DNA of 62,996 bases, counting the filler, from Octopus bimaculoides (Eukaryota): assembly GCF_001194135.2 (NCBI RefSeq). It is 4 parts of 3 records of this genome, joined end to end, with 100 filler letters (N's around TTAATTAATTAA, not from the genome) between each part and the next. Parts side by side here need not be neighbours in the genome. Positions count along the whole stretch, not along the records: positions 1 to 27,978 come from NC_068981.1; 3 more parts are not named here. One strand, 5' to 3'. The notes under the pieces are model-generated. The model was not told where the DNA came from, did no database searches, and was given only the letters and a program-made list of their open reading frames with translations. A program made the translations under genes and the position numbers. How positions within the stretch are numbered: the first letter of the stretch is position 1; the number at the start of each line of letters is the position of its first letter. Of the stretch, positions 1,460-27,336 are shown one piece after another.

Positions 1460-1526
1460 AAATTTATGACAACGACATATTCCAAGAACGCAGTCTCCTC
1501 GGTCAGAACAGACACTTGAAGTGTTA
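1460..1526 (-). CDS. I-EGF array exon A2 (67 nt, phase 2 to 0): NTSSVCSDRGDCVLGICRCHKF
   Basis: Acceptor ctttgttttattacag, donor TTT|gtaaat; paralogous to A1, with the C-x8-C spacing to E2 preserved. Confidence 0.9.
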
Positions 1527-1716
1527 CTGTAATAAAACAAAGACACAAAAAGATAATTGCAATTATATGTTCTTTGCCAACAACTGAAACATATATACAT
1601 GTATGTGTGTGTGTGTGTGTGTTTATGTACATGACATGTATGCATGAATGAAAGTAAATATTGATTTCATAAATAAATAACAACATTTGAAGAATCAAGT
1701 ATTTTACCCATAAATA

Positions 1717-2987
1717 TTGGGTCATGCCATAAATAATGTGATCTTATCAATTGCATGAACTAAAAGTTGGAGGGAGACGAAATAAACTACTTGCATCAAC
1801 TTCCTATGAAAGCAGGTAGTAATTTTACCTTGGACTTATCCTTAGTGCAAGTTCTGAAGAGTGCAGTTCGATTTTAACAGTTATTTTTCAAAGCTATAAT
1901 GGAAGTGACAAAGGGGCATATTCAGCATATTTTGCTTTATGAGTTCAATAAAGGCAACTATGCAACAGAAAGTGCGAGGAATATTGAAGCAGTATATGGG
2001 TATTAGACAATAAGCATAAACATGTGTCAACAATGGTTCCAGAAATTCCGTGCCAGAAACTACAGTCTAAAAGATGAGCCACATCCTGGAATATCTGTAG
2101 AGTTCGACAAGGACGTCCTGCAAACCCTGGTGGAATAAAATTTCATCGTAACTATTGAGGAACAGAGGTTTGGATTTAGTCATTCAACCATTCATTGACA
2201 CCTGCATGCCATCAGAAGAAAAGTCAACAAATTGGGTCGATGGGTGCCTCACGAAGTTTCTGAGTCTAATCACATGCAGAGCGTGCATGTGTGCTCTTCT
2301 TTGCTGTCAAATCTCACGAATGAACCATTTTTGGACCAAATAATGGGTGGTGATGAGAAATGGGTTCTCTATGAAAATGTCAAATGCTGAAGACAGTGGG
2401 TAAGGAAAGGAGAAACATGGGCACCCCAGGCTAAAGAAGGTCTTCCCCCACGTAAGGTATTGTTATCTGTTTGATGGGTTATGAAAGGTTTAGTCTACTT
2501 TGAACTTTTAAACTCAAACCAAACAATAACAAAGGAGATTTACTTCAAGCAGCTTGAATGGCTTAAGTCAGTGCTAGAAGAAAGACGACCATCTTTGATC
2601 TCAAGATGAAAGGCGTTCTTCCATCAGGATAATGCTCAGCCACATACAACGAGGATGACATTCCAAAGGCTGGAACAGTTTGAATGGGAAATGATACCCC
2701 ACCCTCCAAATTCGCCAGACATTGCCCCTTCTGTTTATCATTTATCTTGTAGTCTTCAAAATCATTTGGACAGAAAAAATATGAATTCTGTAGACGAGAT
2801 CTGGACAGTACTGGGGGAGTATTTTTCATCACGGACAAGTGAATTTTGAAAGAGGGGCCTTGCAAGTCTACAGATAGATGGAAAAGCATTGTAGAAAAGG
2901 AAGGAGAGTATATTTTAGATTAAAAAAGAATTTTGTTTATCTTAATTTTGAAGTATAAAACACTGCATTATTTCTGAGATGACCCAA
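1717..2987 (+). mobile_element. Full-length but inactivated mariner transposon
   Basis: TIRs ttgggtcatgccataaataatg / cattatttctgagatgacccaa, each flanked by TA; broken transposase with WVPHE, DEKW, HQDNA and HPPNSPDIAP motifs plus stops and frameshifts. Confidence 0.92.
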
Positions 2988-3899
2988 TATAATGAAATGC
3001 CTGCATTGGAGTTGAATACAAGACTTTTGAGTTGAATACAAGACTTTTGAGTTGACCATTAGGCTAGTGTTAATGTATTTAATTTGGTGAATAACAAATA
3101 TCTAGTTAGAAATACTTAGATGATATAATATTAGTACAAATACTGATATTGTTTTGATAATTTCAGCAAATATAGAAGATAACTCTGAGTATGTTCCAGT
3201 TTTATTAGATTTCCTTAGTTAAGCATATACTTCACTGTACTAACTGAAATTGTGATGAGAGAATAACAATATTGTACATATATAGTTGTGAAACATTAGC
3301 ATATTTAATAAAAGTGTATCATTATGCTATGTATGAGAGTCCAACACCTTATACGTTTCAGCTTTTAAGATTTGGGTTCAAATCCTACCATGGCCTATGT
3401 GGGTGGTATATTTAACTCATCACCTCACATCTTCAGTGCATTTAATGGAGTCTACTTTGTTACAAGCATTCAAGGGCAGGTTACCTGCTTGAGGATACCT
3501 CCTTTTCTCTCTCCTACAAGTCTTGAAGGCCTATAAAAGGTCATAGGGAATGCCTTCTCTGTTGATTAAAAAAAATTAAAATGCCATGAATTTTATGGCA
3601 TTGGACCTATCATCTGAAATGCTAGTGGACCTATCATCTGAAAGACGTACCATTCTATTAGTGATATTAGTCTGAGTTTGTTAACAAAGATTTGACCATT
3701 CAGATCTAAACAGATACCATATTCAACAATACAAAATGATGACACTACATGGTTAATAAGAGTTTCAGTATCTTGGAATATAATCTTCACATCCTCCAGT
3801 GTGCAGGGAAGCTAGGGTTTGCAGCAGCAGTACAACAACAACAACAACAGTCAGATAATGTTCCCTATGTTCATGTGACACATATGGAAGGATCAAAGT

Positions 3900-5000
3900 A
3901 AATCAAATACCTTATATGGAAATAGTGCTAGCAACAAGCAACACGAAACATATTCATGTGATAAATATATAGATACATACTACCATCAACCTCACCAACT
4001 GTTCCATCATGCTCAAAACTTTAATATGAATCTCGCAAAACTAACTATAATAATTCCTTGCTAAGCATCACTTCACCATCATAACTATACCAAAAACAAT
4101 CTCCCATTTCACTTCTTGGTACAAGATAGGGAAAATACAACATGTATGATATGAATATTATATCATGTGCTTTAACTTTCCATTAGACACTGGAAGAGTA
4201 GTAAAAAGTCTCAAGGCCATTCAAAAACACAGATTTCAGAGTATGAAAATCACTTAAAATTTTAACAATTACCATAAACCTGAGAAGCACTTATCTGAAA
4301 TCAATGTACATAGCCCATCCCTTATGCATATCCTTAAAAGATACAATAATAATTTGTTCTTTGACATCTACATTCACTTTCCAACTCACAACTCGGATTC
4401 AGACTCTTACTCTCAACACTCAAGTACCTTACTACTTACAAATGTTACACTCGATTATAAAAGATGAAAGATAAATGACTGCTTCAATAACACTCACAAA
4501 ACAAAAGCTTTAAAAACACCATCCTAACAACCATTGATATCAACTAAATATTTGGATTCCATTCTTTACTACCTACTTTTAAACAAAATACTGACTAACA
4601 AGCTGTTTTGGAGGTTTCAAATTCTATGTAGACTATATCTAGAATCTCCAAGTTCCTAAATGGTGCTCCATCAGAATCCATTTTTCACCAGATTTTTTAA
4701 CTTATGTCTATCTCATCTTTCCAAAAAACATACACACAGTAACATCAGCCACACATGCAAATGATATTCAAGTAAAATTCTCTCATCATTCCCCAGGTAT
4801 AACAGCAAGCACACCTACTCCAACCTACAAACCTGGATCCAAACAAAAACATTAAAAGTAGCACATTCTAAATCCATGAACTTTCTTCTCACCAGAATGT
4901 CCAATACATCAACCGATCATGCTCAACATCATAAACAACATAAATACAGAAGACAAACATTCTAGAAATCATGTTATAATACCTTTATAATATTTACAAC
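3900..5000 (+). mobile_element. Highly decayed LINE reverse-transcriptase remnant
   Basis: Fragments resemble GVPQGSxLSPxLF (aatggtgctccatcagaatccatttttcacc); many stops. Confidence 0.4.
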
Positions 5001-5829
5001 ACAAAAAGAAACATAATAGAGAGCTTGTTAATGAGAGCAAATGTGTTCAAAGCTCTCACAGAAACCACATTTGATCAATACAAAAAAAAAAGAAGAAAAT
5101 AATCAACAACACTAATATTCAGATTGATATATTAGATCCATCACAGATCATGCTTTGTAATATTCAGTTATGGTCAATTACATTCTAAGTTCAAATCATT
5201 CTAGGGTTGACTTTGACTTCCATCATTCTGGAGCTGATGAATGATATCACAATGATATCAAATTACAACCTTAATCTATATTTCAATGAGTGGTCTAGCT
5301 AAGAAAAAAAATAGGTAAGATACAGTTGATAATGTAGTTTCTGATCTAGAAAAAGACAGGTTGATTGTGGCTTGACTAACTTTGATCATAAATCTACCTA
5401 ATCAGAGTTGACCTGGGACTAAATCACAACTGACTGCCTACATGCCACAGGGCTACTTAATTAGAACTGATTTGGGCTTAAACATTGGCATCAACTACAA
5501 CAGCAGCAGCAATTCTGGTCTATCACATTATATATCAAAACTGAAAGTGCATTTTATTAGTATAATGATGCATGAAATGCATTCCAGAAGTCTTGAAACT
5601 TTTTTTTTAGGAGTGGCAGTTATAACTGTCCTAGATTGTTGTAATTTTAGTATATTATTACAATACATCTGATAAACTGACCTCTCAACTTTTGTTATTC
5701 CAGATTGTAGGAGACAGATGTAACAGACAGAACACTGCTTGTCATAGCTGATTAGTTTGCAGAATGCATTTAGGAAGTTTAAAAGCTCACTATGCAATAA
5801 GCTTTGTGTTAAATTAGGCAAAAAATTAA

Positions 5830-6400
5830 AGAATGCTATTTTGCTGGCACAGGAGGTTCAAGGATTGTAGATTGGAGATGAGAGGCAATGAGAGGTGTGG
5901 GAGGGAGAGAGGTATCAGAACAACAGAGCGGGTTGAGAAAATTTGCAATTTTATGGATGAAGACCATCGTGTATCTATAAAGTCAATAAGCATACAACTT
6001 CGAGCTGGTGCAACAAGTGTAGGCAAAATTATGAATGAAGATCTGAACATGTGCAAAATTTGTACAAAGTTGGTTCCTATGGTACTCAGTAACAAGTATC
6101 CTGATAACCAACTGCTTGACTGAGAAGGACATCAAAAACTGTCCCTTACCCTCCTTACAGTCCAGACCTTGCTCCCTGTGACTTTTGGTAGTCCCCCAAG
6201 TCGAAAGACAAGATGAAGGTGGCTGTGGCAAGGATTGTAGACACCTTCATTTTCGAGGACTTCCTTAGGGGCCTTCATGAAGTGACTGGATTGCCACAAG
6301 TGAATTGAAGTCAGAGAATCCTACTTTGAAGGAGATTTATGAGTTTTCTTCTTTGAAAATAATGTCTTTCCTGAAAAAGTCTGCAAACTTCTGGAATGTA
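5830..6400 (+). mobile_element. Internally deleted mariner remnant
   Basis: WHRRFK...ICTKLVP helix-turn-helix region followed by a PYSPDLAPCDF-like segment (ccttacagtccagaccttgctccctgtgactt) and a terminal repeat. Confidence 0.75.
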
Positions 6401-6489
6401 TCTAGTACGAAAGCCACTACATCTGCTACTAATGAGGGTGGTAATTATCATCACTCTTTCTTATCATAATTTAATGTTCAGTTTTCTAT

Positions 6490-6700
6490 AATTGCAAGGG
6501 TCTGATGGAATTTGTTGAGGTAGATTTTTCTTTAGCTAAATGCCTTTCCTGTCACCAACCTTTGCTTGTTTTCAAGTAAGATAATATTTCCCTGTGGCCA
6601 AACATGTTTTTCACAGAAGGAAACAAACATCACGTGTATGATGATGACACTCATTTACAACCATCGTGTGATGTCAACAGAAAGGCATGCATAAAAACAC
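6490..6700 (-). mobile_element. SINE family A variant tail
   Basis: Reverse complement of the tail seen at 10890-11015. Confidence 0.6.
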
Positions 6701-6707
6701 ACGCACG

Positions 6708-6748
<41 letters not shown>

Positions 6749-7465
6749 ACACACTCACACACACACTCACAGACACTCACACACACACACACACTTTCAC
6801 ACACACCAACTCACACACACATGCTACAAGGGGGAAGGGAAGAAGCTATGTTAAATTGGAGGCTTGGCTTTAATGATTGCAGCAGAGTATTCTTTGCCAA
6901 GGACATATTAAGTCTACCACCAAGGAACTAAAAACAAAAAGGTGAAACAGATATCATAAGGCTCCTTATTTGCTGCCCTAACAATTCTGCTTCCACTGCC
7001 TGGATTGATACTTAATTTTATCAAAGGATGACCACTGCAGAAATTAAACTCAGAGATTAAAATATTTATACAAACTTAAAACCAGTTCAAATATGTTTGA
7101 GAGATACTTGAATGTGTAAAGGTTTTTCACTGCAGTTTTTCGTAAACAAAAATTCTCATTCAAAATAAAAAGGAGTTAAAATACCATAATCATCTTGGAG
7201 CACTCTCTAAGATTGATGGATGCATTTTGAACTTGTTTGCTTTCTTAAACACCAACACCAGAGGGACAACTCTGAGCTGATTAGCAAGCAAAGCTTCCTT
7301 TATCATAAATTAGCATATATAATTTACTGTTTGCATGCCTATACATGAGTAAAATAATTATGTATTTTAAGGTGATCACATACCTTAAAATGGTCCTGTA
7401 ATGTAGTGCAGACATAGAAACAACAAAAGAAAAAAAAAATAAACTAAGCAAAAAATATTATTTAC

Positions 7466-7503
7466 CCATCGATACATCTAGCTGTAAGATTTTTTTCTGA
7501 TTG
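7466..7503 (-). CDS. I-EGF array exon E2 (38 nt, phase 0 to 2): QSEKNLTARCID(G)
   Basis: Acceptor ttattttgtgacag, donor GG|gtaaat; same length, phases and Cys position as E1. Confidence 0.85.
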
Positions 7504-8022
7504 CTGTCACAAAATAAAATAAAAAACTGGTATAAACATATTAACAAGCTGTAGGGTAAAGAAAACAGTAAAATATTGGCTCTTAGCTCCAGGCTTTATG
7601 GCACTAAGTGGAAGTCAGTTTTAAACAGACTGTCTCTCATATGTATCCTGTTGACCAGTATATGAGTATGAGATAGAAAACGGTACTGTAACTTCCTTAA
7701 GCCTTCATGAATTTTGCTCTGATCTTATTCATTTTTATATTTGATAAATGAGAATGGGTGTTTTAGATTCTTTCTTAGTTTCATGTTCAGCGTGCAGCAT
7801 TAAAACATGTCACGAGATGCACATTCACAAACTTTCTGCTGAGTTGTCAATCATTCATTCACTCAGCAATTATGTTCTTTATTAAAGATTAACAAATAAC
7901 ATGTTTATCAAAATGAAATTAAAAGTAAAATATCTATTTACATACATTTATTGAAAGTAAAAGCTAATTTGAAATATGAGAAAAAGCAACAAGGTACAAC
8001 TACTGGAATAGTAAGAAATTAC

Positions 8023-8106
8023 CAAACGGAATTCACATTTTTTGCCAAAATAATTAGGTTGACATATACAGCGATTATTTTGGCAGTTACCACGTCTACT
8101 GCAGAC
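8023..8106 (-). CDS. I-EGF array exon D2 (84 nt, phase 0 to 0): VCSRRGNCQNNRCICQPNYFGKKCEFRL
   Basis: Acceptor tttatctttgacag, donor TTG|gtaatt; paralogous to D1 (shared GNC..NRC.C...YFGK.C). Confidence 0.9.
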
Positions 8107-8323
8107 CTGTCAAAGATAAAATATATTAGTTAAAAGCAATATATATATATATANNNNNNNNNNNNNNNNNNNNNNNNNNNNNNNNNNNNNNNNNNNNNNN
8201 NNNNNNNNNNNNNNNNNNNNNNNNNNNNNNNNNNNNNNNNNNNNNNNNNNNNNNNNNNNNNNNNNNNNNNNNNNNNNNNNNNNNNNNNNNNNNNNNNNNN
8301 NNNAAGATAAATAGTTGAATAGA

Positions 8324-10510
8324 TGAAATATTTTTATTGTGTCTGGAGAGAGTCATTCTGTTTTAATGCCTAATCAATTAACACATTCACCAATTTGATA
8401 TTCACTCATTTACTTATTTATTTTTTCTAAAATTTTCATTGCTTCTTGCAACCTCTTCAATAGTCATTGACTGTCAGTTATCAGAGTCGCATTCTTTTTG
8501 TTTGTTTGTGCACATGTGTGTGCATCAGTGTGCATGAGCATGCATATTTGTATGTATGTATGTATGTATGTATGTATGTGTGTATGTATGTATGTATGTA
8601 AGTGTGAAGTGTGTGTGTTTATATGGTCATGTGTTTCAGTCTTCTTTTGTGTATGTGTGTGTGTGTGTGTCCGTATTACCTATGTACCCATCTTTCTACC
8701 TATCTATCTGTTTACTTACATATCCATTTACCTACTTACATGTATATGTGTGTGTGTGTGTGTGTCTACATAACGACCTACTAACAAATCTACTTGTGTA
8801 TGTATAAACTGTGGGTATTGGGGTATCTCTACCTTCTATGTATATCTCCTATTTAGTACTGGGGTTGCTTCATTTATGAGGACATACATCTGTATTTGTT
8901 AGAGTGTTGGGTCCTTCAGGTACTTGGATAAAATGCGGATGTCAAGTTGACTCAGTGTGCCTCCATGTTGGTCTTTGGCATGTTGGTTGAGTATGGAGGA
9001 CTGTTTTTTGTCATTATATTGTCTCAAATGTTATTTAATCTCTCCTTGGCTTTTCAACGATCTTAATGTTGAGATTGGCCTCCTTCAGAGCTTTCCTAAA
9101 TCTTCGGGTTAGTTCTCCATAGTCTGTGGCCTCTACAAATATCATTCCTTGATATTTGTTGGCCTTGTACCATGTGTTCACCCTGTTTGCTTTGTCACAA
9201 ACTCTCTGTATCCTATTCCAGTCTTTACTTCTGTATCTAGGGCAGGTACCACTAGTTTTGTTACATATAATGCTATCTCACTTTTTTCTAGTTTCCCTGT
9301 ATACCTGAATCCTATCTTTCTGGTCATATCCAGAGAATTGCATGTGGTGCATGAAGTTTTGTACATGTTTCCTTGTTTCATAGGGTTCACATAGGTGGGG
9401 ACATGTTATTCATTATCCTAAGACTGCTATCAGTATGTTGAATTTCATGTTGTATGACAAAGCCGAGTTCTTGTGAACAACATATTTAGAAGCTATGGGC
9501 TTCATGTAATAGGAGTGGAGGAGCTGCACTCTGTTGTTCACAGTCTTTAACTAAAGTTCAGTATCAAGGACAGGGAGTTTATTGTTAGGGTGTCTAGTGA
9601 GGTAATCTACAGTTACCTTGATACTTTGATGGATGGAGTTAGCTACGTGCTTGATGCTCTCCATAATGCTCCTCTCGGTTTCTACTCTACAGTTACTAGA
9701 GTTTGTCCTAACTAGGATATAAATGTCATCTACATACCTACAGCAAAGCAAATTAGTTGTGGATTGTTCAGCTAAGGATTGTTTAAGCTTTCTGTCCCAC
9801 CAGCCACACTTCCAGCCACACTGACACCAAAAGCTACACCTTGAACCTGCATGTATAGTTTCCTGTTAAACTTTACTATGTGGTTCTTCAAGGTGGTTCT
9901 TATGCTAGCCCCTGTTGCATGTGCAATTATTCTTTTCACCTGATTGTTGTTCTTAGGGCCCTGAGTGGGTATGGTCCAGCTACTCCAGTGCTCTGCGGTG
10001 CTTTTCCTTACTGCTGAGGTAATAGTGGGTGGTCTTCCCCTCAGTGATCTGGTGGGGCAGAATCTACTATGGGCATGATTGTCTAGGTAGTTACAGTCAT
10101 AGTTTAGACTAAGGAGGAGGCTCAGTTCCCTTGTGTTGACTTTGCAGAACTCTGTCTCACTCTCACAAATAATCTCAATACATTTTTTCACAGCAAAATC
10201 TATGTCTATAGATGGGTAAAGTGAAACTACATCCATACTACCCACTACACAACCTGTGAGGTTGTTGGAGTGGTTGCAACTACTGATTCTACTGAGGAGA
10301 TCCTCTGTACTCAGACAGACATCCGGGGACATTTCAATGAGTAGTCGTAACACCTGTGAGAAGAAGTAGGATAGCCTGTAATTGCTGGAGATATTCACTC
10401 TGCAAACTAGCCAGGTTGGAGGCTCCATAACAGGGTTTATGTAGGGTTTATGGTCCTTATGTAACCCACATAGCGTATGAACATAAGAATCTTGCAAACC
10501 AAATACAAAA
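8324..10510 (-). mobile_element. Penelope-like retroelement (RT plus GIY-YIG side), degenerate
   Basis: ORF fragments carry SMDVVSLYPSID, LYMQVQGVAFG, CRYVDDI and LPVLD. The 8324-8480 tail recurs at 12920-13100 and contains a decayed hammerhead-like core. Confidence 0.85.
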
Positions 10511-10734: not shown

Positions 10735-10849
10735 TTCAACCATGTGGTCTTGGATTCATTTTAGCTGGCAAGCATCTTCTTCTATAGCCCCAGGTTAACC
10801 AAAGTCTTGTGAGTGAATTTGGATGACGGAAACTGAAAGAGGCCCAGTG

Positions 10850-10891
<42 letters not shown>

Positions 10892-13239: not shown

Positions 13240-13535
13240 TAATTGACCCCAGAACTTTTTTTTTAGCCTAGTACTTATCCTATAAGTTTTTGTGTTTTTT
13301 GGCGAACTGCAAAGTTGCAGGGACATAAACACGCCAACACTGGTTTTCAAGTGGTGATGGAGGTGGCAAGGATAAATATAGACACAAAGACACACACATA
13401 AATATAGTTTCCGTCTTCCAAATCTATTCACAAGGCTTTGGTCAGCCCAAGGCTATAATAGAAGGCACTTGCTCAAGGTGCCACACAGGGGGACTGAACT
13501 TAGAACCATATGGTTGAGAAGCACACAGCCCATAC
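13240..13535 (-). mobile_element. SINE family A
   Basis: Reverse complement of the family A body. Confidence 0.75.
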
Positions 13536-13923: not shown

Positions 13924-14320
13924 TATGTGGCAAGAAGGTTGCTTCCTAACAACACGGCTGCAGGTTCAGTCCCATTGTGAAGCATACTGGGCAAGTGTTT
14001 TCTACTATAGCCTTGGAGTGACGAAAGCCTTGTGAGCAGATTTGGTAGATGGAAATTGGAAGAAGCACTTTGTGTGTGTGCATGTGTGTGTGCGTGCCCG
14101 CATGCATGTGTGTGTATGTTTCTGTGTGTGTGTATTTGTGTCTGTGGTTGTCCTTCGCCATGGTTTGACAAGTGATGTTGACAAAAGAGGTTGATAGAAT
14201 AAGTACCAGGCTTTAAAAAAAATAGGTTTTGGTGTTGATTCATTCAACTAAAATTTCTTCATGGCAATGCCCCAGCATGGCCGTGGTCTAATGACTGAAA
14301 CAAGTCAAAGATAAAAGAGA
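13924..14320 (+). mobile_element. SINE family A, near full length
   Basis: Head through tail homologous to 1-350. Confidence 0.85.
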
Positions 14321-14593
14321 AGTAATTTTCTCTTCTTGTTAAGAGATTTGATCACTGTTTTAGATCATAAGAATCCATAATTTCTGATGAAAATATAAAA
14401 GAAAACATTTATTAGTAATTCAGCTGCATTCTTTCAAGAAATATGTTAACCTTTGTAGTATAAGCTCATAAAGCTCTGACGAGATTCTGCCCCATATAGT
14501 TGAAAATGATGATCATTTCTTAGCATATGACCCTTCCCAAATGCTTAGAATTACTAATCGCCTTGGGATATGAATCAAAACATGTATATAGTT

Positions 14594-15293
14594 AAGATAT
14601 AGAAATAATTAATTCTCAAACACTGAATAATGCTAACAGAATAGCAGGAACAGGATAAAATATCCATATTTTTGCAGTAAAATTTGCCAGCAGTCAGCCA
14701 TGAGACTCGAACTCACATTCCTGTGATTACTGGTCATAGTGCTTTACCATTAAGCTAAACTGTCCACTGACAATTTAATCTGCCATTTATGAGCTTATAA
14801 AGCTAGCTTTATAAGACGTTGATGGTAAATTCAAATTATGATGAAAGTAAACAAATTTTCTGCAAAATATGGATATTTTATCCTGTTCTTGCTATTCTGT
14901 CAGATTTATTCTACTTTTTAGAATTAATTATTTTTGTATCTTTCAATATATCTCAACTCTTCTCAAAAAATAAAAAAAAGCAAACTTTGTTTGTTTACTT
15001 TCATCATAATTTGAAATTACCATCAGCGTCTTATAAAGCTAGATTTATAAGCTCAAAAATTGCATATAAACTTGTCAGAGGGCAGTTTAGCTTAATGTTT
15101 AGCACTATGGCCGGTAGCCAAAGGGATGTGAGTTTGAGTCTCATGGCTGGCTGCTGGCAAACTTTTCTTCAAACATATGGATATTTTATTCTGTTAGCAT
15201 TATTCTGTGTTTGGGAATTAATTATTTCTATATCTTTCAATACATCTCAATGCTTTAATAAAAAAAAGCAAACTTTGTTTACTTTCATCATAA
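14594..15293. mobile_element. Foldback element: an inverted pair of tRNA-Thr(AGT)-like units with a partial tandem 3' duplication
   Basis: 14594-14853 is the reverse complement of 14992-15236. Each arm holds TAGCTTAATGG (A box) and GTTCGAGTC (B box), with anticodon loop CCAGTAA in the minus copy. 14862-15010 duplicates 15165-15293. Confidence 0.75.
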
Positions 15294-15473
15294 TATATGT
15301 AGGTATTTGGTATCAGCCATTTCTTTTAGAGATTTATAATTTATTTGTATTGTTTTTATAAAAAAATCTTTCAACCTCATTATATCATACAAATAAATTA
15401 TTTACACATCCATAATTCTCCATTTTCTTCCTTTCATCATTATTAACTATATATATATATAGATATAAATATT

Positions 15474-15517
<44 letters not shown>

Positions 15518-15530
15518 NNNNNNNNNNCAC

Positions 15531-15561
<31 letters not shown>

Positions 15562-15672: not shown

Positions 15673-16189
15673 CTAAAATCAAATGCAAAAATTACAAATT
15701 AATAACAGTTAATGATTTTGCAAACTACACATACAATTATTTTCTTCAATGATAATAAATCATATATCCTGACTTAAAGAAAATGACACCGACTAGTAAT
15801 ATAAAATAACAAAGGCATAAAATAACAAAGGAAGTCTCTACTTAGGGATCTCCGAAACTAAGACAAATTTAACTCCAGAAGAAATTTCACTTACTTATAA
15901 TATAAATTGCTGATTCTGGATTTGTACATATATTTTTCCCAATTAGAATTTTTAAAAATTCAAAGTTAGGAAGAAAATTTGAAGTAGGTTTCTTTTGTTT
16001 TTTTCTTTCTATCTCTTTGGATTTAGAGAGTTTATGTAATGCACCTGAGTAATTATACAATAAGCTCATAGTAATAATAATAATAATAATAATGATAATA
16101 ATATTAATAATGTGGAGAGATAGCAGAATTGTTAGTACAATAGACAAAAGATTAGTAGAATTTCTTCTAGCTTTACAGTCTTTACTCTT

Positions 16190-16592
16190 TTACTCTTTTA
16201 CTTGTTTCAGTCATTTGACTGCGGCCATGCTGGAACACCGCCTTTAATCGAGCAAATCGACGCTAGGACTTATTCTTTGTAAGCCTAATACTTATTCTAT
16301 CAGTCTCTTTTGCCAAACCACTAAGTTATGGGGATGCAAACACACCAGCATCAGTTGTCAAGCAATGCTGGGGTGACAAACACAGACACTAACATATACA
16401 CACAAATACATATGTATATATATACATATATACGACAGGCTTCTTTCAGTTTCTGTCTACCAAATCCACTCACAACGCTTTGGTCGGCTCGAGGCTGTAG
16501 TAGAAGACACTTGCCCAAGGTGCCATGCAGTAGAAATGAACCCGGAACCATGTGGTTTGTAAGCAAGCTACTTACCACACAGCCACTCCTTA
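16190..16592 (-). mobile_element. SINE family A, near full length
   Basis: Reverse complement of the family A head and tail. Confidence 0.88.
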
Positions 16593-18726: not shown

Positions 18727-18952
18727 AACCTTTTAGCATTCAGATTATTCTGTCAAATGTAATGTTTGTTTATTCACATTGCTTTGAGTTAATCATACAT
18801 TATCTTGTAACTTTGAGATTTCATTGATGTGATTGTTTACTTTTGGAATGACATTGCAGAGTAGATGTGAGAGGCCTGATCTGGCCAGTTTGAACATAAA
18901 ACTAATAGAATATTTAGGCCAGATATGGCCAGTTTGAATATGAAAGGGTTAA
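18727..18952. mobile_element. piggyBac-like MITE (second family; related partial copy at about 17017-17210)
   Basis: aaccttttagcatt ... aatatgaaagggttaa termini; internal homology with 17020-17200. Confidence 0.6.
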
Positions 18953-19589: not shown

Positions 19590-20045
19590 GTTGTTGTTGT
19601 TGTTGGCACTCTGTCGCTTATGACGTCAAGGGTTCCAGTTGATCCGATCAACGGAACAGCCTGCTCGTGAAACTAACGTGCAAGTGGCTGAGCATTCCAC
19701 AGACACATGTACCCTTAATGTAGTTCTCGGGGATATTCAGCGTGACACAGTGTGACNNNNNNNNNNACACATGTACCCTTAATGTAGTTCTCGGGGATAT
19801 TCAGCGTGACACAGTGTGACAAGGCTGACCCTATGAATTACAGGCACAACAGAAACAGGAAGTAAGAGTGAGAGAAAGTTGTGGTGAAAGAGTACAGCAG
19901 GGTTCGTCACCATCCCCTGCCAGAGCCTCGCGGAACTTAGGTGTTTTCACTCAATAAACACTCACGACGCCCAGTCTGGGAATCGAAACCGCGATCCTAT
20001 GACCGCGAATCCACTGCCCTAACCACTGGGCCATTGCGCCTCCAC
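19590..20045 (-). mobile_element. tRNA-derived SINE, family C
   Basis: Minus-strand head ggaggcgcaatggcccagtggttaggg...gtttcgattccc (A and B boxes); tail shared with 50820-51070 and 62190-62500. Confidence 0.85.
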
Positions 20046-20108
20046 TGACCTGGAACTAAACAACAACTAAAGTCTCTGTTTGAAATGTAACAACATAAAT
20101 ATACTTAC

Positions 20109-20178
20109 AGGTTTGGTACTACAATGACAGTAGCCTTGGACACAGTTACCTCTATTTGAGCAGACAGGTGATGTACGG
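20109..20178 (-). CDS. I-EGF array exon A1 (70 nt, phase 2 to 0): RTSPVCSNRGNCVQGYCHCSTKP
   Basis: Acceptor gattttattattcag, donor CCT|gtaagt; I-EGF2-like CSNRGNC motif. Confidence 0.92.
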
Positions 20179-20719
20179 CTGAATAATAAAATCATAAACA
20201 AAGTTATATAAACCATTTAACATTATGATTTGTTCATCAATAGAATTAATTACTATATGATCAATTTTATTTTAACTGCTTAGATTTGGGAATAAAGGAT
20301 AATCACTCATGGCCCTTTATTCTTTCAATGCCTCTGAAATGGGCAAGTGAAAAGAAAGATGTTACTCTCAAACAAGAGAGCTGTTATGAATGCTTACAAC
20401 TGAGTGAATTCTGTAAAATGCTCTCGAAGAACAAATGATGGTATTAAACCAGCCAACAGATAGTGTTTACCACACTGGAACCCAGACTGTTACAAGACAT
20501 CACATCCTATGCTCAAAGCAATTCCACAAATCCATCATCCTGCATTGTTACTTTATCGTTAAACCTGAAAGAGCATCAAGAAATACAACAAAGCTGTTCG
20601 TCTTATACTCTAATGATCATAACCTTGCTTTTCACCATGTCACTGACTAACTCTCTCTCTCTCTCTCTCTCTTTCTCTCTTTCTACTTCTCTCTTTCTCT
20701 CTCATCCCTCATCTATCTA

Positions 20720-20752
<33 letters not shown>

Positions 20753-21259
20753 ATGTATGTATGTATGTATGTATATACACGTATGTATGTACATGTATGT
20801 GGTATGTACAGTCGTGTATGCTTGTCAAGAGCAGGGCTCATTAGCCACCAACAGAGCCGCAAATGCAAAATATAAGTTAGTCCTAGCGCGCACAATGTTT
20901 CTGAAAGTCGGCAATGGTCTTCCTCGGTCACGAGTGGACGGCCATCATCATGTATGTATGTATAGTTCACAGATGAGATCCAAAGACACTGTATAGAAGA
21001 GACCTAATAGTGCTCAAAAGATTCAGACTTAAACTTGAATGTCTTTACAGGGAATCATCCCACACAGTAAAGAATGACTATAAGAGAGGGATTGAGTTTA
21101 GCAGTTATAGAGGCAATTATACAAATAAACAGATAAGACACATTAAATATATTAAACATAATAAATACATCAAATGCAAAATATGTATACTTCTTTTATT
21201 CTTTTACTTGTTTCAGTAATTTCTTTCAGTGGCCATGCTGGAAATTTGTTGGATGCACA

Positions 21260-21530
21260 TTCATTGATGTGCTGGCTGAGAGATATTTTCCTGTATTCTG
21301 GAATTCATTTGAGATTTGTGCACCGATGGTGGTGCACGAATCTCAAATTAGAATTCCGGAATACAGGAAAATACCTGTCAACCAGCACATCGATGAATGG
21401 GCATCCAACAAATTTCCCAAATTCACAACATTTCCATTATACAAATGCAAAGACAATGCTAGCCAAGATAAACGCATTAGCAAGGAAATGCATTTCATAA
21501 GAAAATATCAACCGAGTCTAAATTCTTTAA
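21260..21530 (+). mobile_element. Penelope-like GIY-YIG endonuclease C-terminal fragment
   Basis: HESQIR..EYRKIPVNQHID...[18 protein letters not shown], a typical Penelope-like EN ending. Confidence 0.7.
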
Positions 21531-21671
21531 ACTCGCACACATATGTATGTATATGTATGTATATATGTATGTGTGTATATATGTGTATGTGTTTATGTAT
21601 GTATATGTGTATATATATGCATGTGTGTGTATGTGTGTGTGCATATATATGTGTGTATGTGTATGTATGTT

Positions 21672-21722
<51 letters not shown>

Positions 21723-23314
21723 GAGAGTGTGTATGTATCTGTATGTGTATATATATGTATATGTACATATGGGTGAGTATATATATATGTATGTGTATGT
21801 GTATATATATATATGGATATATGGATATGCAAGTTATTCATAAGAAGTAAAGATAAGGGGTTGAAGAACCCGATTTCTATTAAAACCCCAGGGGGAACAA
21901 CTTCCCCATGACGACTATTATTATTACTGCTGCTAGTTACTCGACAGCTACAGTCACTCTTATAGAAAACAAGTCTTGACCACACTACTTAATTTACCAT
22001 CACAGATAGTAGTCATTTGCAGTCACATACAGTAATCGAAATTACTTGCAGAAAAAAGGACAGTAAACTATGAATGTTTATTTTAATTTTAATTTTAATT
22101 TTATTTTATTAATAGCTCTTTTCTCTCTACATATTCCATTTTAGTACATATTTTTGATAAGGTTTTTTCAAAAACTGAAACATGTAAAACAAAACTAAAA
22201 TATTCTTCTTTTAATGTATTTATATAAAGAAAATTAAAATGTACCTGATTTCAAGAAGGTAGCATTTTCATTCTTCTTTTTCATAAATACATACATACAT
22301 ACATATGTCTTGCCCGCTCACGTTTTTGGTATGCTGCTATATTTCATGTTGAGAACAATTTAGGTTTTAATAGACACAAGATGTGATCTATTTCTAGCGC
22401 ATCAATTGTCCACGTTAGTGGTCGACGTTATTTTTTAAAATGTACCTTAATCCCCTGAGATTGCAGATAATATTTCTGAATCTCTTTGATTCTTTAGATG
22501 TGCTGGCCTACTGATAATTAATCGATATTAATTGATATATGACTAATTACCAGATTTTACAATAATATTTTAATACATATATANNNNNNNNNNNNNNNNN
22601 NNNNNNNNNNNNNNNNNNNNNNNNNNNNNNNNNNNNNNNNNNNNNNNNNNNNNNNTATATATATATACATACACACACACACATATACATACACACACAC
22701 ACATATACATACACACACACACATATACATACACACACACACACACATATATATATATAAAATACATTTGAATTGAAATAGTTTCCCCAAATTAAACATA
22801 TCAAATATGATAAATGTGAATGTCGGTGTGTCAGTGTGTCACACTTTTTCAACTTTAATCCTAGAACCATTTTGGAATCAGGCTGACTCCATGAGTAAAT
22901 TAAAATCATTCCAAGCCGAATCTGGTCCTACAATCCTGAAATTTGGGATTCCTATGTTTTCATTACTGCAATTCTTTTCGGTAATTTTCTTTACATGATT
23001 GTTAGCAACGAATGTGATCATCATTGGGATATGACTCTGGAGAAAGCAATTGCAACAAATTCTCCAAAACAAGTCAGAGATGTGTTTGCAGATCTTCCCA
23101 TTCGGGGTTAGTTGCTTACAAGCTATGTAAGAGCTTAAAAGCTGCCTGATAGGTAGATAGATAGATAGATATACATATGCATGATATATATATTTAAACA
23201 AAAACACACACATACAGATATATATACACAGACATATATAACTAAAAACAACAAAATGAATGTTCTTATTTAGTCATACTCTATGATAGAAAATTTACAA
23301 TGAGATTTTCTTAC

Positions 23315-23352
23315 CTCTGTTTACAACCTGAATTCTCACTACTTCTAGATTC
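23315..23352 (-). CDS. I-EGF array exon E1 (38 nt, phase 0 to 2): ESRSSENSGCKQ(S)
   Basis: Acceptor cctttaccttttag, donor AG|gtaaga; supplies the single Cys and the phase shift needed between D1 and A1; same length as E2. Confidence 0.85.
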
Positions 23353-23549
23353 CTAAAAGGTAAAGGTTTTGATTTAATATAAGAGGTATTGCTTTTATAA
23401 AGAAAACATTACGAGGCTTATTTCAAATGTTTTCAGTGGAAACAGGAAAAAAATAAATAAATAAAATAAAAAATACAAAGGCAAAGAAAATAATTCATTC
23501 TGCATAAATCTAAGTTCATTCTAATGAATCACTGAGTGAGCCACTACAT

Positions 23550-24235
23550 CAGTGGTTTTCAACCATTTTTTTGTCTAAGGACCCCTTTGATTCCAATTTT
23601 TACTTTACTAGACTTCCATAGCTAATCAATGTATATAAAAAGCATCCTACTATATTTTAATAATGAAATATTATTAAGAATTATATAAAAAATAAAGATA
23701 TTTTGTATATAAGATATTTTCTATAAAATCAATTTATTGCAGTCAAAGGCGACACATGAAATCTTTCGAGCGGGATCGTTGCCAGTGCCCCTGGACTGGC
23801 TCATGTGCGGGCGACACATGATATCTTTCGTGCGAGATCGTTGCCAGTGCCCATGGACTGGCTCTTGTGCGAGTGACACATGAGGTTTTTCGAGCGAGAT
23901 CGTTGCCAGTGCCCCTGGACTGGCTCTTGTGCGGGTGGCACATAAAAGACACCATTTCGAGCGTGGCCGTTTTCGTGCGGGTGACACGTAAAAGCACCCA
24001 CTACACTCTCTGAGTGGTTGGCGTTAGGAAGGGCATCCAACTGTAGAAACTCTGCCAAATTAGATTGGAGCCTGGTGTTGCCATCCGGTTTCACCAGTCC
24101 TCAGTCAAATCGTCCAACCCATGCTAGCATGGAAGGCGGACATTAAACAATGATGATGATGATGATGAAATTTTGACAACAAAATCTTATATGGACCCCT
24201 AAGGGTATATGAACCTTGGTTGAGAATGACTTCTC
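23550..24235. mobile_element. hAT-like MITE interrupted by a nested retro-type element with 62-bp tandem repeats and a (GAT)n tail
   Basis: cagtggttttcaacc ... ggttgagaatgactt ends with a near-TSD (cactacat / ctctacgt); nested segment at about 23745-24170. Confidence 0.65.
23749..23985 (+). repeat. 62-bp minisatellite, three copies plus a degenerate fourth
   Basis: gacacatg recurs at 23751, 23813 and 23875, with a variant at 23937. Confidence 0.9.
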
Positions 24236-24559
24236 TACGTGGTTGAGGAACCTGCTAAAAATAGTATCTAAATCTTCATGAAATTACCTCGATTATTTTT
24301 TTTAAATAGGTCACACATTAGATAGTAAAATGCAAGATAGCAACACAAGATGTGATGGCCATGACTAGACTGCTTTGATCAAAGAGCTGCTGGAACAAAG
24401 TTGACCTTGGCTAAGTAACAAAAACAGCCTAAATTCATATTACCATTTTATTAAAAATATTAATATTGCTCTGTCACTAAATACATTCGACATTGTATTT
24501 TCTATGAAAACATGGCAGTATATAGCAAAGGACTTTGATACTGAATACTATATATTTTC

Positions 24560-24915
24560 TACATTATTTACATTATTTACATTGGACAGATATGTGTCCT
24601 CATCTTCTTTGTTGTTACCACAACATTTTGGCTGATTTACTCTCCAGCCTACATCAGGTAAAATTTTGAACCCAACCCTAGGTTCTCATTCCTAAGGTAT
24701 TTTTTGCTGATGTTACTGTTATTATTATTTATTCAAGGCACTACCTGAAATTGAACTTAGAATCTTGGAGTTAGTAGCCCACACTCTTAACCATTACACT
24801 ATATACCCGTGGACATCCTGATGAAGGCTGGAGAGTAAATCAGCCGAAACGTTGTGGTAACAACAAAAAAAATGAGGACACATATCCGTCTAATATAAAT
24901 AATGTGAATAATGTA
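24560..24915. mobile_element. Foldback element: about 100-bp inverted arms with a hammerhead-like core, enclosing a tRNA-like segment
   Basis: 24560-24658 is the reverse complement of 24817-24915. The right arm has CTGATGA-a-GGCTG..CAGCC-GAAA. Loop 24735-24808 (minus) reads atagtgtaatggttaag...gttcaatttc. Confidence 0.75.
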
Positions 24916-25244
24916 CAGAATTCCTCATCTCTAAAATATAGAACTATATATTTTCTGTTTTAATAGGTTGAAATCAAAGTAGATAAAGCTATGAATAAAT
25001 AGCAAATATTGGGTAAAAAAAACCCTTCAGGTAGGAAAAGTTGAAGGCTGCTTGTGGGATTTAAACTCATATCTGTAAACATGACAATCTTTGACTTTTG
25101 CAACCCAAAGAGATTTAAAACCCAGTATTTACCCACTACATTTTAATTGCATTATCAACAGTTCAACTATTAAAAATGAATTATTTCATGTTCTCTCAAA
25201 GTTTCTAAATTCTTGACATAAACACTCTATATTTTAATAATTCT

Positions 25245-25635
25245 TTCTAAATTTTGGCACAAGCCCAGAAATTTTGAGGGGACGGAGAAGTCAGTAACCT
25301 CAACCCCAATACTCAACTGGTACTTATTTTATTAACCCCTGAAAGGATAAAAGGCAAAGTCTAACTTAACAGCATTTGAACTCAGTATGTCAAGCCAAAA
25401 GAAATGCCTCTAAGTATTTTTTCCAACATGCTAACAATTCCATTAGTTTGCTACCTTATGCTATATAGTTTAATGATAATTTCAAATTTTTGGCACGTGG
25501 CCAGCAATTTCGTATAGGAGGCAAGTTAATTACACTGACTTCAGTGCTCAAATGAAACTTATTTTATCAACTCTGAAAGGATAGAAGGCAAAGTTGACCT
25601 TGGTGCCATTAAGCATTTTCCAGGTATGATAACAA
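25245..25635 (-). mobile_element. Two adjacent decayed SINE family B copies
   Basis: Both show the ttttggcac...caactggtacttatttt...gcaaagt pattern. Confidence 0.65.
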
Positions 25636-25986
25636 CTATATATTTTAATGATAAAGAGGCTAATGAAGAACAATTCCATTAATACATGTGTTCATTATTG
25701 GAAAAAACATGGCTCTCTCAAATTACAAGCACCTTATAAGCATTGCAATTCTGCTTCCATACATACATCCTACAAGTAGTGTATCTTCAAATCTACTTGT
25801 TCTGTATATTAATCATTTAAACATTGTATCCTCCAGACATATATTTAGATGTTCTTCATAGAAATTAATGAAGGTGACACAGTCATCATGGTAGAATATA
25901 TCCGTGTGGGCTTTATAGATTTCCAGCATGGCATCTTGCAATTATTTTCAATATAAGTAATCAAAAATTTTTCTTCATTTACAAAC

Positions 25987-26073
25987 CTGTGTCTTTTGAC
26001 AGAATTTGCCAAAATATGGTGATTCACATTGGCACCGATTTCCAATACAGTTTCCATGTCCACTGCACAGTTG
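25987..26073 (-). CDS. I-EGF array exon D1 (87 nt, phase 0 to 0): QLCSGHGNCIGNRCQCESPYFGKFCQKTQ
   Basis: Acceptor caatactttatag, donor CAG|gtttgt; continues in frame from C1 (SNG-QLCSGHG). Confidence 0.9.
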
Positions 26074-26525
26074 CTATAAAGTATTGTGAAAATAATTTTA
26101 TATGATTAAAGATATAGTTATGAAGAGAAGGTAATGATTGACAATTATTACAAAAAGAATCTTAACAATGACTTCTTACATATGCACATGATTATAAATT
26201 GTCAGAGAAAGTATTTGTTGATTAGTTTATGAGTGACAGTGAATTTATTGACCTTTGTGGAGCGAAGACTTACATCAGCAATAATGGATTTGAAATAATT
26301 GTATTAAGAATATATCTTGAGCCTTGATATGTCTTGTGAGACAGTGGATCTGTACCCAAAAAGTTTCCTTATAAGGTGCAGGCCTGAGCAAGGTTTATTT
26401 TTATAGAAACTGCTCATGCAAGCAAGTCTCTCAACACTGATATCATCCAAGGGACTAGTATCATCATAGGTATTACCATCAGAATAAGAAGTTTGAAAAC
26501 AGTTACTGTAATGCAGCATATTTAA

Positions 26526-26991
26526 CCCTTTTCTTGCAATATTTCTGCTGAAATACAGTTTATATTTCAATTAATTTTGAAAGCAATAAGGAATTTATTA
26601 AAATAATTTTGTCATTATTAATCTTGTGTTTGGAACATGAATTGGTATGAAAATTTTGATGGAAGGTTTTAATCAAAATCACTTTAAAACAAAATATGTA
26701 TTATAGGATTAGGGGCAGTTTCAGATGGGTTGATATCAGACAGGATCTTTTATAAATACAAGCCAATCCTCTGTTCTAGACTCAACCCATCCAAAATTAC
26801 TCTCAGTTCTACAGTAAAATTTACCGTTTTAAAAGGAATATAAATTATAACCTTCTACTGAAATTTCATGTGAATATATATTCCAAATACCTGTTTGATA
26901 ACAACACAATTATTTCACTAAATTCGTCATCATTTTCAGAATTTATTGAAATAAAGGAAATGTATCTAAGAGATATACAGTTACAAAAGGG
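26526..26991. mobile_element. piggyBac-like MITE, 466 bp
   Basis: TTAA|ccctttt ... aaaaggg|TTAA with imperfect TIRs. Confidence 0.8.
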
Positions 26992-27226
26992 TTAATGAAG
27001 CCTGACAAACAGTCAAAATTGGCCTGAGTGGAATTTGAACTCTGAGCACAGAGTGCTAGAATAAAATTGCAAGGCATTCTATCTGATGCTTTAATGAATC
27101 TGCCAATTTGCTGTCTCCTTGTATGTAAAGGTGACTAAATACTAAGAAGCATTTAGTCTGGCATTCTATCTTTCTTATATATATGAAGAATATTTTATAA
27201 TAAACAATATTATAAATTCTACTTAC

Positions 27227-27336
27227 TCCATTTGATGATAAGCAGTTTTGATTAGCTTGATCAACATCACATGCTTCCCCACTATATGACTGTTGGCAAT
27301 GGCATTTTCCACATTTACAATTTCCATGGTTTCTCC
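27227..27336 (-). CDS. I-EGF array exon C1 (110 nt, phase 1 to 0): RNHGNCKCGKCHCQQSYSGEACDVDQANQNCLSSNG
   Basis: Acceptor ttttatgtcttttag, donor GGA|gtaagt; resembles integrin beta I-EGF3 running into I-EGF4. Confidence 0.93.

Follow-up and report, generated by a model that had tools for sequence, protein, structure and literature searches.

What kind of protein results when a gene carries the leg of an integrin beta subunit in repeated copies? The question is raised by a locus in Octopus bimaculoides (NCBI RefSeq assembly GCF_001194135.2), where nine exons at positions 1460-27336 of the 62,996-nucleotide stretch of DNA that we analyzed (the window, filler included; positions 1 to 27,978 come from NC_068981.1) splice in frame in the order C1-D1-E1-A1-B1-C2-D2-E2-A2 and code for a chain of integrin-type epidermal growth factor (I-EGF)-like modules. 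With regard to identity and architecture, we are confident that the gene codes for a headless, anchorless and presumably secreted integrin-beta paralogue of ~976 residues, in which a canonical set of leg domains is retained and greatly lengthened, and from which the ligand-binding beta-I domain and the transmembrane (TM) anchor are missing.

Nine exons encode two units of an integrin-type leg

A six-frame scan of the window for cysteine-rich open segments placed all candidates on the minus strand. The nine exons, each bounded by an AG acceptor with its polypyrimidine tract and by a GT donor, measure 110/87/38/70/82/110/84/38/67 nt from C1 to A2; they sum to 686 nt and translate in frame into 229 residues with 36 cysteines, and one C-D-E-A-B unit corresponds to 387 nt or 129 residues. 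Exon C1 (27336-27227, minus strand like all that follow; 110 nt, entered in phase 1) codes for the latter half of an eight-cysteine (8-Cys) '3-like' I-EGF and the first cysteine of the following six-cysteine (6-Cys) '4-like' module, and is 96% identical at the nucleotide level to its counterpart, exon 23 of O. vulgaris. The remainder of the 4-like module is provided by D1 (26073-25987, 87 nt, phase 0 to 0). E1 (23352-23315, 38 nt, phase 0 to 2) encodes a linker and the first cysteine of a 6-Cys '2-like' module, the core hairpin of which (CSNRGNCVQGYCHC) lies on A1 (20178-20109, 70 nt, phase 2 to 0); B1 (15672-15591, 82 nt, phase 0 to 1) completes that module and begins the next 8-Cys 3-like I-EGF (CECDDFSC...CGG). 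The second unit repeats this arrangement with C2 (11421-11312, 110 nt), a paralogue of C1 that corresponds to O. vulgaris exon 28; D2 (8106-8023), which is D1 minus one codon and measures 84 nt in O. vulgaris too; E2 (7503-7466, 38 nt), a paralogue of E1; and A2 (1526-1460, 67 nt), a paralogue of A1. The short E exons were sought blind, as AG...GT/GC segments with a length of 2 mod 3 and stop-free in the required frame, and one candidate per relevant intron joined a cysteine to a good acceptor and donor.

The resulting peptide is 100% identical to residues 197-425 of the O. bimaculoides protein XP_014791256.1, and it aligns without gaps to residues 569-797 of the 976-residue O. vulgaris orthologue (86% identity), whose exons 23-31 have the same lengths as the nine exons described here. 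The window thus holds exons 23-31 of a 36- or 37-exon O. bimaculoides gene, which cover unit 4 together with part of unit 3 and the beginning of unit 5. Beyond the left edge of the window the gene runs on through B, C and D to the exons of the beta-tail: after A2, XP_014791256.1 continues with 'GSYRYTGQFCEC...' on to a beta-tail and a stop.

EGF_integrin is the top Pfam family for the window peptide (2e-24), above EGF_2 and EGF_Teneurin, and the best match in the PDB is to residues 431-590 of integrin beta-2, the I-EGF1-4 region (2.9e-22); with such values the integrin-stalk signal is far above chance. An earlier sequence-only reading of this DNA had proposed the in-frame chain of nine exons, with their lengths and phases, as well as the five-exon, three-module period of 387 nt and the affinity to the integrin beta stalk. 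The match to XP_014791256.1 confirms the exon coordinates, the same periodicity recurs in the O. vulgaris exon map, and the stalk affinity is borne out by the Pfam and PDB searches. Also correct was its observation that a 4-like module is followed by a 2-like module in place of a beta-tail, which gives at least six modules in the window (four complete, two partial).

The protein is already present in public databases under contradictory names, so the existence of the gene is not new. A cluster look-up placed in a single cluster the O. vulgaris protein CAI9716324.1 ('integrin beta pat-3', 976 residues), the O. sinensis protein XP_029637747.1 ('tenascin-X', 976 residues) and two O. bimaculoides proteins, XP_014791255.1 ('integrin beta-2-like', 379 residues) and XP_014791256.1 ('integrin beta-like protein 1', 604 residues). 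The last two are the N-terminal and C-terminal parts of one gene that RefSeq has split. The split point is the first E exon, and both models have artefactual ends there: XP_014791255.1 ends '...CERREVCT', and XP_014791256.1 opens 'MCNCYTFTGSVFIFCC' and rejoins the orthologue at 'SGTTEICSNQG'. When the 229-residue peptide was used in a word-indexed protein search there was no match, despite the presence of the exact entry in the collection; an exhaustive HMMER search of 1.84 billion representatives recovered it and matched the 976-residue protein at 1e-238. Other full-length relatives are a 983-residue protein of Argonauta hians (65% identity) and an unnamed 983-residue cuttlefish-like protein (48% identity), for which the nearest named relative is Acanthosepion pharaonis; shorter relatives are found in Haliotis (537-540 residues) and Mercenaria (771 residues).

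The protein has the leg of an integrin beta subunit but neither head nor anchor

The full-length protein consists, in order, of a signal peptide, a PSI domain, a hybrid domain without an inserted beta-I domain, I-EGF1, five blocks of modules 2-3-4, a beta-tail and a stop. The first block comprises a canonical I-EGF2-3 pair followed by a 6-Cys module 4, and the next four are of the form 2'-3-4, so the leg contains 16 EGF modules (I-EGF1 and 15 more). The PSI domain lies outside the window, in XP_014791255.1, the N-terminal model of the same gene; a profile built from six family N-termini matches the PSI region of integrins beta-1, -3 and -7 (1e-16). When aligned to integrin beta-7, this profile matches in two stretches (query 22-111 to chain 25-125, and query 115-208 to chain 363-459), and the ~237 residues skipped between the two halves of the hybrid domain amount to the whole beta-I domain (~240 residues). 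By comparison, the profile aligns in a single stretch to the beta-2 PSI/hybrid/I-EGF fragments 2p26/5e6v/5e6w. In precomputed Pfam annotation, PF00362 (beta-I) and PF08725 (cytoplasmic) occur in no member of the family, but in all of the canonical integrin-beta matches listed.

At the other end of the protein, a profile of the last 92 residues matches residues 598-688 of integrin beta-3 end to end (1.5e-11), and the stop codon follows immediately after the beta-tail in all orthologues and in the assembled mRNA described below. The highest-scoring 19-residue hydropathy windows are all N-terminal, and the protein should presumably be secreted. Pfam at E<=0.01 called neither PSI_integrin nor Integrin_B_tail on the full-length orthologue; the PDB profile searches settled both. 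The N-terminal alignment (cephalopods and abalone) has 34 invariant columns and the C-terminal one 18, cysteines included.

Could the head and anchor simply have been missed by gene prediction? The beta-I domain is absent from six gene models that come from different pipelines and from one assembled mRNA. The latter encodes the 983-residue cuttlefish-like orthologue: contigs of 2-5 kb in 50 blocks of the Logan assemblies of sequencing runs (among them SRR29271466, SRR8281663 and SRR20545814) carry it as one uninterrupted open reading frame (ORF). Stops in the same frame precede the ATG, the ORF ends immediately behind the beta-tail, and a 3' untranslated region follows; this is mRNA-level evidence for the protein in a cuttlefish-like cephalopod. 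When a canonical Haliotis integrin beta was used as the tblastn query, the 113-kb O. vulgaris locus and its 10-kb flanks yielded EGF matches only and no exons for a beta-I domain, a TM segment or a cytoplasmic tail, and the two halves of the hybrid domain are parted by an ordinary 2-kb intron. The uninterrupted mRNA ORF, the negative tblastn search and the ordinary intron together argue that the beta-I domain and TM segment have not merely been overlooked. Among the elements that the sequence-only reading had suggested looking for beyond the window, further units, PSI, hybrid and the beta-tail were all found, but beta-I, TM and NPxY were not.

The leg was lengthened with a frame-neutral exon cassette

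The exact exon map of O. vulgaris reveals how the leg is built. Exons 1-9 code for the signal peptide, PSI and hybrid domains, and exon 10 (134 nt) for I-EGF1 and the start of module 2, ending in phase 2. Exon 10 is followed by A (70 nt), B (82 nt), C (110 nt) and D (87 nt), and then four times by E (38 nt), A (70 nt), B (82 nt), C (110 nt) and D (87 or 84 nt), with 67 nt for A and 79 nt for B in the last copy; the last exons encode the beta-tail. The A-B-C-D block is therefore present five times, its copies linked by four 38-nt E exons, and E equals the last 38 nt of exon 10 in both length and phase. With D ending in phase 0 and A entered in phase 2, splicing D directly to A would break the frame, which E (2 mod 3) restores; and since the added E-A-B-C-D cassette measures 387 nt (3 x 129), every addition preserves the frame. 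The leg has been lengthened by the addition of four such cassettes.

The five-unit layout is found in Octopus, in Argonauta and in the cuttlefish-like mRNA. Five 3-like modules (CxC-x4-C...CGG) occur in all three full-length cephalopod proteins; in O. sinensis they are at residues 294, 423, 552, 681 and 807, with a period of 129 residues, and in the other two proteins they lie within a few residues of these positions. The expansion is old and common to octopods and a decapodiform, although we claim no order of duplication. Units 1, 2, 4 and 5 of Octopus and Argonauta are positional orthologues (63-70% identity on the diagonal of the comparison). Octopus unit 3 is nearer to Argonauta unit 2 than to Argonauta unit 3, and units 2 and 3 of O. 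sinensis (residues 423-680) are 71% identical over modules 3-4, compared to 41-59% for other pairs of units. This pattern suggests either gene conversion or a later duplication inside the array.

Most modules have six cysteines, and the cysteines are conserved

To describe the modules we scored as '8' those with a C-x-C-x-x-C-x-C core (the I-EGF type, with C5) and as '6' those with C-x4-C-x-C and no C5; the '6' modules also have a residue other than cysteine at C1, the position that follows the preceding C8. I-EGF1 does not match the core motif and is left out, so that 15 modules were scored. After I-EGF1 the octopus modules read 8,8,6,6,8,6,6,8,6,6,8,6,6,8,6, and nine of the 15 are thus of the 6-Cys type. 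Those in the window read 8,6,6,8,6,6, with the 8-Cys cores at peptide positions 7 and 136 and the 6-Cys cores at 46, 91, 174 and 219; two of the six have the eight cysteines of an I-EGF, and in the other four both C1 and C5 are replaced. Judged by cysteine pattern, strict I-EGFs would be the 3-like modules and the very first module 2 only, and the earlier description of the modules as I-EGFs holds for the 3-like modules but not for the other two of each unit, where C1 and C5 are gone. Module 4 has six cysteines in chiton, limpet and abalone relatives too, compared to eight in the canonical Haliotis integrin.

Across ten orthologous or paralogous two-unit segments, each of the 36 cysteines in the window peptide is invariant, and all 36 are kept between O. 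bimaculoides and O. vulgaris. For the same pair of species the ratio of nonsynonymous to synonymous divergence (dN/dS) is 0.55, at a dS of 0.13; the scaffold is conserved and the loops are fairly fast-evolving.

An AlphaFold2 (AF2) model of the window peptide (mean predicted local distance difference test score, pLDDT, 68.8; predicted template-modelling score, pTM, 0.26) has the expected hairpin at each G-x-C...G-x-C-x-C and is of low confidence only in the E-encoded linkers (residues 67-75 and 197-203), which is consistent with the E exons coding for flexible linkers. When the model was used as a Foldseek query, the top 25 matches were integrin beta chains, followed by the EGF arrays of Notch and Jagged. 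The low pTM is as expected of a flexible rod, and accounts for low TM-scores to integrins despite good E-values.

A cephalopod form of a beta-I-less molluscan family

The octopus protein shares with canonical integrin beta subunits (ITGB2/ITGB3, PDB 3k6s_B and 3fcs_B; Haliotis cracherodii integrin beta-PS-like) the extracellular order PSI, hybrid, I-EGF1-4 and beta-tail, and its module 3 keeps the full 8-Cys I-EGF pattern. It differs from them in having no beta-I/VWA domain with its metal ion-dependent adhesion site (MIDAS) and no TM/NPxY tail, in having 16 EGF modules rather than four, and in its module 4 and repeated module 2, which appear to have lost the C1-C5 disulfide. The contiguous PSI-hybrid-I-EGF arrangement without an inserted beta-I domain does have a parallel in the PDB, in the engineered beta-2 fragments 2p26, 2p28, 5e6v and 5e6w, which are the only PDB chains matched by the N-terminal profile in a single stretch; these, however, were made in the laboratory from a canonical integrin and have neither an extended leg nor a beta-tail. 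Zebrafish has three truncated beta-1 paralogues, beta1tr-1/2/3, that are without TM and cytoplasmic domains and have been proposed as possible secreted antagonists (PMC1538996), but these keep the A (beta-I) domain and four EGF repeats and have lost the beta-tail (PMC1538996), a mirror image of the octopus loss.

The closest relatives outside the cephalopods are short molluscan proteins: those of the chiton Liolophura (XP_064594424.1 and XP_064617978.1), Lottia (XP_009044231.1) and Haliotis (XP_046562643.1), and the H. rufescens 'integrin beta-1-like X2'. They belong to the same family. Each starts with a signal peptide and PSI, has a hybrid domain that lacks beta-I, and ends after the I-EGFs with a beta-tail and a stop; module 4 is again of the 6-Cys type, and these proteins provide the best non-cephalopod match for the first four EGF modules (138 bits). 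They have four EGF modules (chiton, limpet) or six (abalone) and no repeat of the 387-nt cassette. The octopus protein is the long-legged cephalopod form of this beta-I-less family of chiton, limpet and abalone. The sequence-only reading had raised the prospect that orthologues with the same architecture were already annotated across molluscs; the exact architecture is indeed annotated in cephalopods, and the members annotated in other molluscs are shorter. In abalone (Haliotis rufescens and H. rubra), the six modules result from a two-module insertion of 88 residues, in which one 6-Cys module combines a module 4-like start with a module 2-like end, and an additional module 3 comes after it. 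Abalone leg extension is therefore a different route from the three-module cassette of cephalopods.

In the literature that we could search, we found no description of a beta-I-less integrin-beta family that keeps PSI, hybrid and beta-tail, nor of its 387-nt cassette expansion, nor of the mixed 8-Cys/6-Cys module pattern, and a literature search on ITGBL1 and integrin beta-like proteins of molluscs and other invertebrates gave no relevant description. It is conceivable, if still tentative, that this is an undescribed and conserved molluscan family of secreted headless integrin-beta paralogues, possibly kin to percomorph beta-I-less 'integrin beta-1-like' proteins, which regulate integrin conformation in soluble form or serve as rods in the matrix.

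Several other proteins without a beta-I domain were noted along the way. Many teleosts (Scomber, Trachinotus, Centropristis, Pungitius, Nothobranchius and others) have 'integrin beta-1-like' proteins of ~360-370 residues without a beta-I Pfam domain, and a 450-residue protein of Leuresthes tenuis appears to run from a signal peptide and PSI through hybrid and I-EGF1-4 to a beta-tail and to have no TM; its 6-Cys module is module 2, not module 4. When the N-terminal profile was used in a word-indexed search, the matches were teleost beta-I-less proteins alone, without even the molluscan query sequences themselves, and the search was unusable for mapping the distribution of the family. Proteins of Mercenaria mercenaria (771 residues) and Penaeus vannamei (971 residues), and a Logan protein of 453 residues, have two to three tandem sets of I-EGF modules plus beta-tail and no beta-I; the shrimp protein has Integrin_B_tail three times, and we found no description of this tandem layout.

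Alternative explanations

Might the gene instead be the cephalopod orthologue of vertebrate ITGBL1 (TIED)? ITGBL1 consists of a signal peptide and ten integrin-type EGF-like repeats only (PMC7563769); it was described as a 'stand-alone integrin stalk' in work of Berg et al. (1999) as cited in PMC8921176, and is reported to be secreted and to inhibit integrin activation, through a mechanism that has yet to be worked out (PMC8921176). The likeness is considerable: both proteins have a signal peptide, no head, no TM or tail and more than four integrin-type EGF repeats in tandem, NCBI calls both the O. bimaculoides and the Haliotis proteins 'integrin beta-like protein 1', and the ITGBL1 proteins of frog and mite match the window peptide well. 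However, PSI, hybrid, I-EGF1 and beta-tail, all present here, are missing from ITGBL1 (PMC7563769). The frog repeats, as read from the sequence, alternate between 2-like and 3-like, a period of two modules compared to three in octopus, and in the incomplete frog ITGBL1 model eight of the eight motif-scored modules are of the 8-Cys type, compared to nine of 15 with six cysteines here. Furthermore, in pairwise comparisons of the first four EGF modules, the chiton beta-I-less protein scores 138 bits, the canonical Haliotis integrin beta 110 and frog ITGBL1 76. Orthology to ITGBL1 is thus improbable, and of the earlier suggestion of an ITGBL1-like secreted protein there remains the headless and anchorless form with its predicted signal peptide, but not the bare array of repeats.

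A second possibility is that we are looking at a decaying integrin-beta duplicate, either a transcribed pseudogene or a neutral relic. The loss of head and anchor, the relatively high dN/dS and the fact that we found no functional study in the literature would all fit. Yet at least four cephalopods have an intact ORF of ~2.9 kb, spread over 36 or more exons and with the number of units kept, the 36 window cysteines are maintained both between species and across paralogous units, the architecture of the family is conserved in chiton, limpet and abalone, and mRNA has been recovered from many sequencing runs. We consider decay very unlikely.

The sequence-only reading had also offered a long-legged integrin beta. 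As a genuine, heterodimer-forming subunit with an extra-long leg, it would have its beta-I, TM and NPxY exons outside the window. In favor of such a subunit are the best PDB and Pfam matches, which are to integrin beta, the presence of PSI, hybrid, I-EGF1 and beta-tail in the orthologues, and the database names 'integrin beta pat-3' and 'integrin beta-2-like'. The gene models and mRNA without beta-I, the stop right after the beta-tail and the lack of beta-I, TM or tail exons in the O. vulgaris locus and its flanks leave this interpretation with hardly any probability, and it has to be given up for orthologues that have no beta-I, TM or cytoplasmic tail.

Nor is it at all plausible that the units belong to separate tandem genes, or that the repeat arose as an artefact of assembly or annotation, for instance as an echo of scaffolding over the N gaps. 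Suspicion is reasonable enough, given four gaps within the span, a repeat-rich region and a RefSeq model split in two. All four N runs in the window fall in introns, and three of them (15518, 22584 and 8154) adjoin or sit near microsatellites: that at 22584-22655, between E1 and A1, is near (AC)n at 22663-22747; that at 15518-15527, 64 nt downstream of the B1 donor, is beside (TA)n at 15448-15517; and that at 8154-8303, in the intron 48 nt upstream of the D2 acceptor, is near (TGTA)n at 8549. The fourth, at 19757-19766 between A1 and B1, has no microsatellite listed there. The pattern of gaps beside simple repeats fits read-through failure rather than misjoins. Moreover, the window is collinear with an independent, gap-free chromosome assembly of O. 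vulgaris (locus 63.9 to 90.3 kb), with identical exon lengths and with alignments that flank or span every gap; a single blastn high-scoring segment pair covers both exon B1 and the gap at 15518-15527, and at 8154-8303, where the O. vulgaris intron is ~2.6 kb longer, there is no exon within the extra sequence. No exon is hidden in or displaced by any gap.

The two units themselves are also too different for a recent copy. Paralogous exons are 45-61% identical at the DNA level and the two units 47% identical at the protein level, and because their introns are unrelated apart from dispersed repeats, the repeat is not an assembly echo; the old duplication proposed by the sequence-only reading therefore stands. 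Separate tandem genes, which it had named as the contrary case, are contradicted by a single mRNA that carries all five units in a related cephalopod, and by the E exons, which are conserved and correct the frame that a D-to-A splice would break.

Finally, there is next to no chance that this is a tenascin- or teneurin-type EGF matrix protein that has become integrin-like by convergence, an idea prompted by the name 'tenascin-X' of the O. sinensis protein. Of the 15 motif-scored modules, nine do belong to the 6-Cys CxxGxCxC type that runs in series in such proteins, and Pfam EGF_Teneurin is above its cut-off for both the window peptide and the full-length orthologue (matching the 4-like modules); EGF_TEN passes for the orthologue only (58.5 bits against a 65-bit cut-off for the window peptide) and EGF_Tenascin is a weak, sub-threshold match of the window peptide alone (24.8 bits against 25). 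Against this, the FN3 repeats and fibrinogen-like globe that follow the EGF array of a tenascin, and YD or other tenascin or teneurin domains, are absent (Pfam finds EGF-type families only in the 976-residue orthologue), the flanking PSI, hybrid and beta-tail are specifically those of integrin beta, and EGF_integrin is the top Pfam family, with integrin beta chains outranking other EGF proteins in both sequence and fold searches.

Possible function and points that weigh against it

As a headless and anchorless integrin-beta paralogue, the protein would have no MIDAS-bearing head with which to bind ligand or to pair in canonical fashion with the propeller of an alpha subunit, and no TM segment or tail through which to signal. 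The most probable picture is that of an extracellular, disulfide-rich and semi-rigid rod with flexible, E-encoded hinges, having PSI and hybrid domains at one end and a beta-tail at the other. By analogy with ITGBL1 it might modulate cell-surface integrins or matrix interactions via leg-domain contacts, which is our leading hypothesis, though one of low confidence; a structural role in the matrix, or as a spacer, is the main alternative.

Several of our observations weigh against parts of this picture. The role as an integrin modulator depends entirely on the analogy with ITGBL1, and yet the protein scores lower with ITGBL1 (76 bits) than with canonical integrin beta (110 bits); secretion is predicted from sequence features; and a dN/dS of 0.55 implies only moderate constraint outside the cysteines. 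The mRNA support is from another cephalopod, the O. bimaculoides RefSeq model being split in two. An AF2 model of the N-terminal region made from four sequences is of low confidence (pLDDT 52.6); its top Foldseek matches are the beta-2 PSI/hybrid/I-EGF fragments, which agrees with the sequence comparisons but is not independent proof. As for the history of the array, an identity matrix of Octopus and cuttlefish-like units gives clear one-to-one orthology for unit 5 only, and the five-unit state could be due in part to concerted evolution.

Integrin legs are usually seen as passive supports of the ligand-binding head. A protein in which all leg domains are kept, head and anchor are deleted, and the result is conserved and expressed suggests that the leg may have an extracellular function of its own. 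To our knowledge, ITGBL1 is the only stand-alone integrin stalk to have been studied. Should the headless family prove real, its members would be natural equivalents of the engineered PSI/hybrid/I-EGF fragments, and cephalopods would have tuned the length of the rod through four additions of a frame-neutral cassette of five exons; if this family is sister or ancestor to ITGBL1, the stand-alone stalk may have arisen stepwise, with head and anchor lost first and PSI, hybrid and tail later. The four EGF modules of chiton, six of abalone and 16 of cephalopods provide a natural length series in which the effect of rod length could be tested. The locus is a modest case of domain loss and exon-cassette expansion, and a clear one of frame-preserving cassette amplification with a 38-nt adaptor exon. 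At a practical level, automatic names such as 'tenascin-X', 'integrin beta pat-3', 'integrin beta-2-like' and 'ITGBL1' could mislead censuses of mollusc integrins and transcriptome studies.

Other features of the introns

An ORF screen of the introns found no second gene on either strand, only the relic of a mariner-type transposase. The relic, in the intron between B1 and C2 (12288-12704, plus strand), is a 138-residue ORF that matches Pfam Transposase_1 (a partial mariner-type DDE domain) at 2.7e-9. An ORF at 5833-6123 (plus strand) resembles by eye the N-terminal helix-turn-helix of mariner transposases and has no Pfam match, and one of 241 residues in the intron between C2 and D2 (9772-10497, minus strand), also with no Pfam match, is possibly a degraded retroelement ORF.

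Copies of a dispersed element of ~350 bp, resembling a short interspersed nuclear element (SINE), are found at 2-349, 16185-16525, 13406-13484, 13988-14066, 14178-14329, 10767-10856 and 21179-21222. The two longest are 90% identical, the element is the sole similarity between the introns of the two units, and there are more copies in the O. vulgaris locus. The B1-C2 intron also contains a tRNA-Thr(AGT)-like sequence (14690-14765, minus strand; ARAGORN, and Rfam tRNA with 35 bits against a gathering score of 29 bits), which could be a tRNA gene, a pseudogene or the head of a tRNA-derived SINE. Lastly, the intron between D1 and E1 contains a tandem repeat with a 62-bp period (23748-23947; 3.2 copies, 87% matches), relatives of which occur at three sites in the O. 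vulgaris locus, and which is probably part of a dispersed element.

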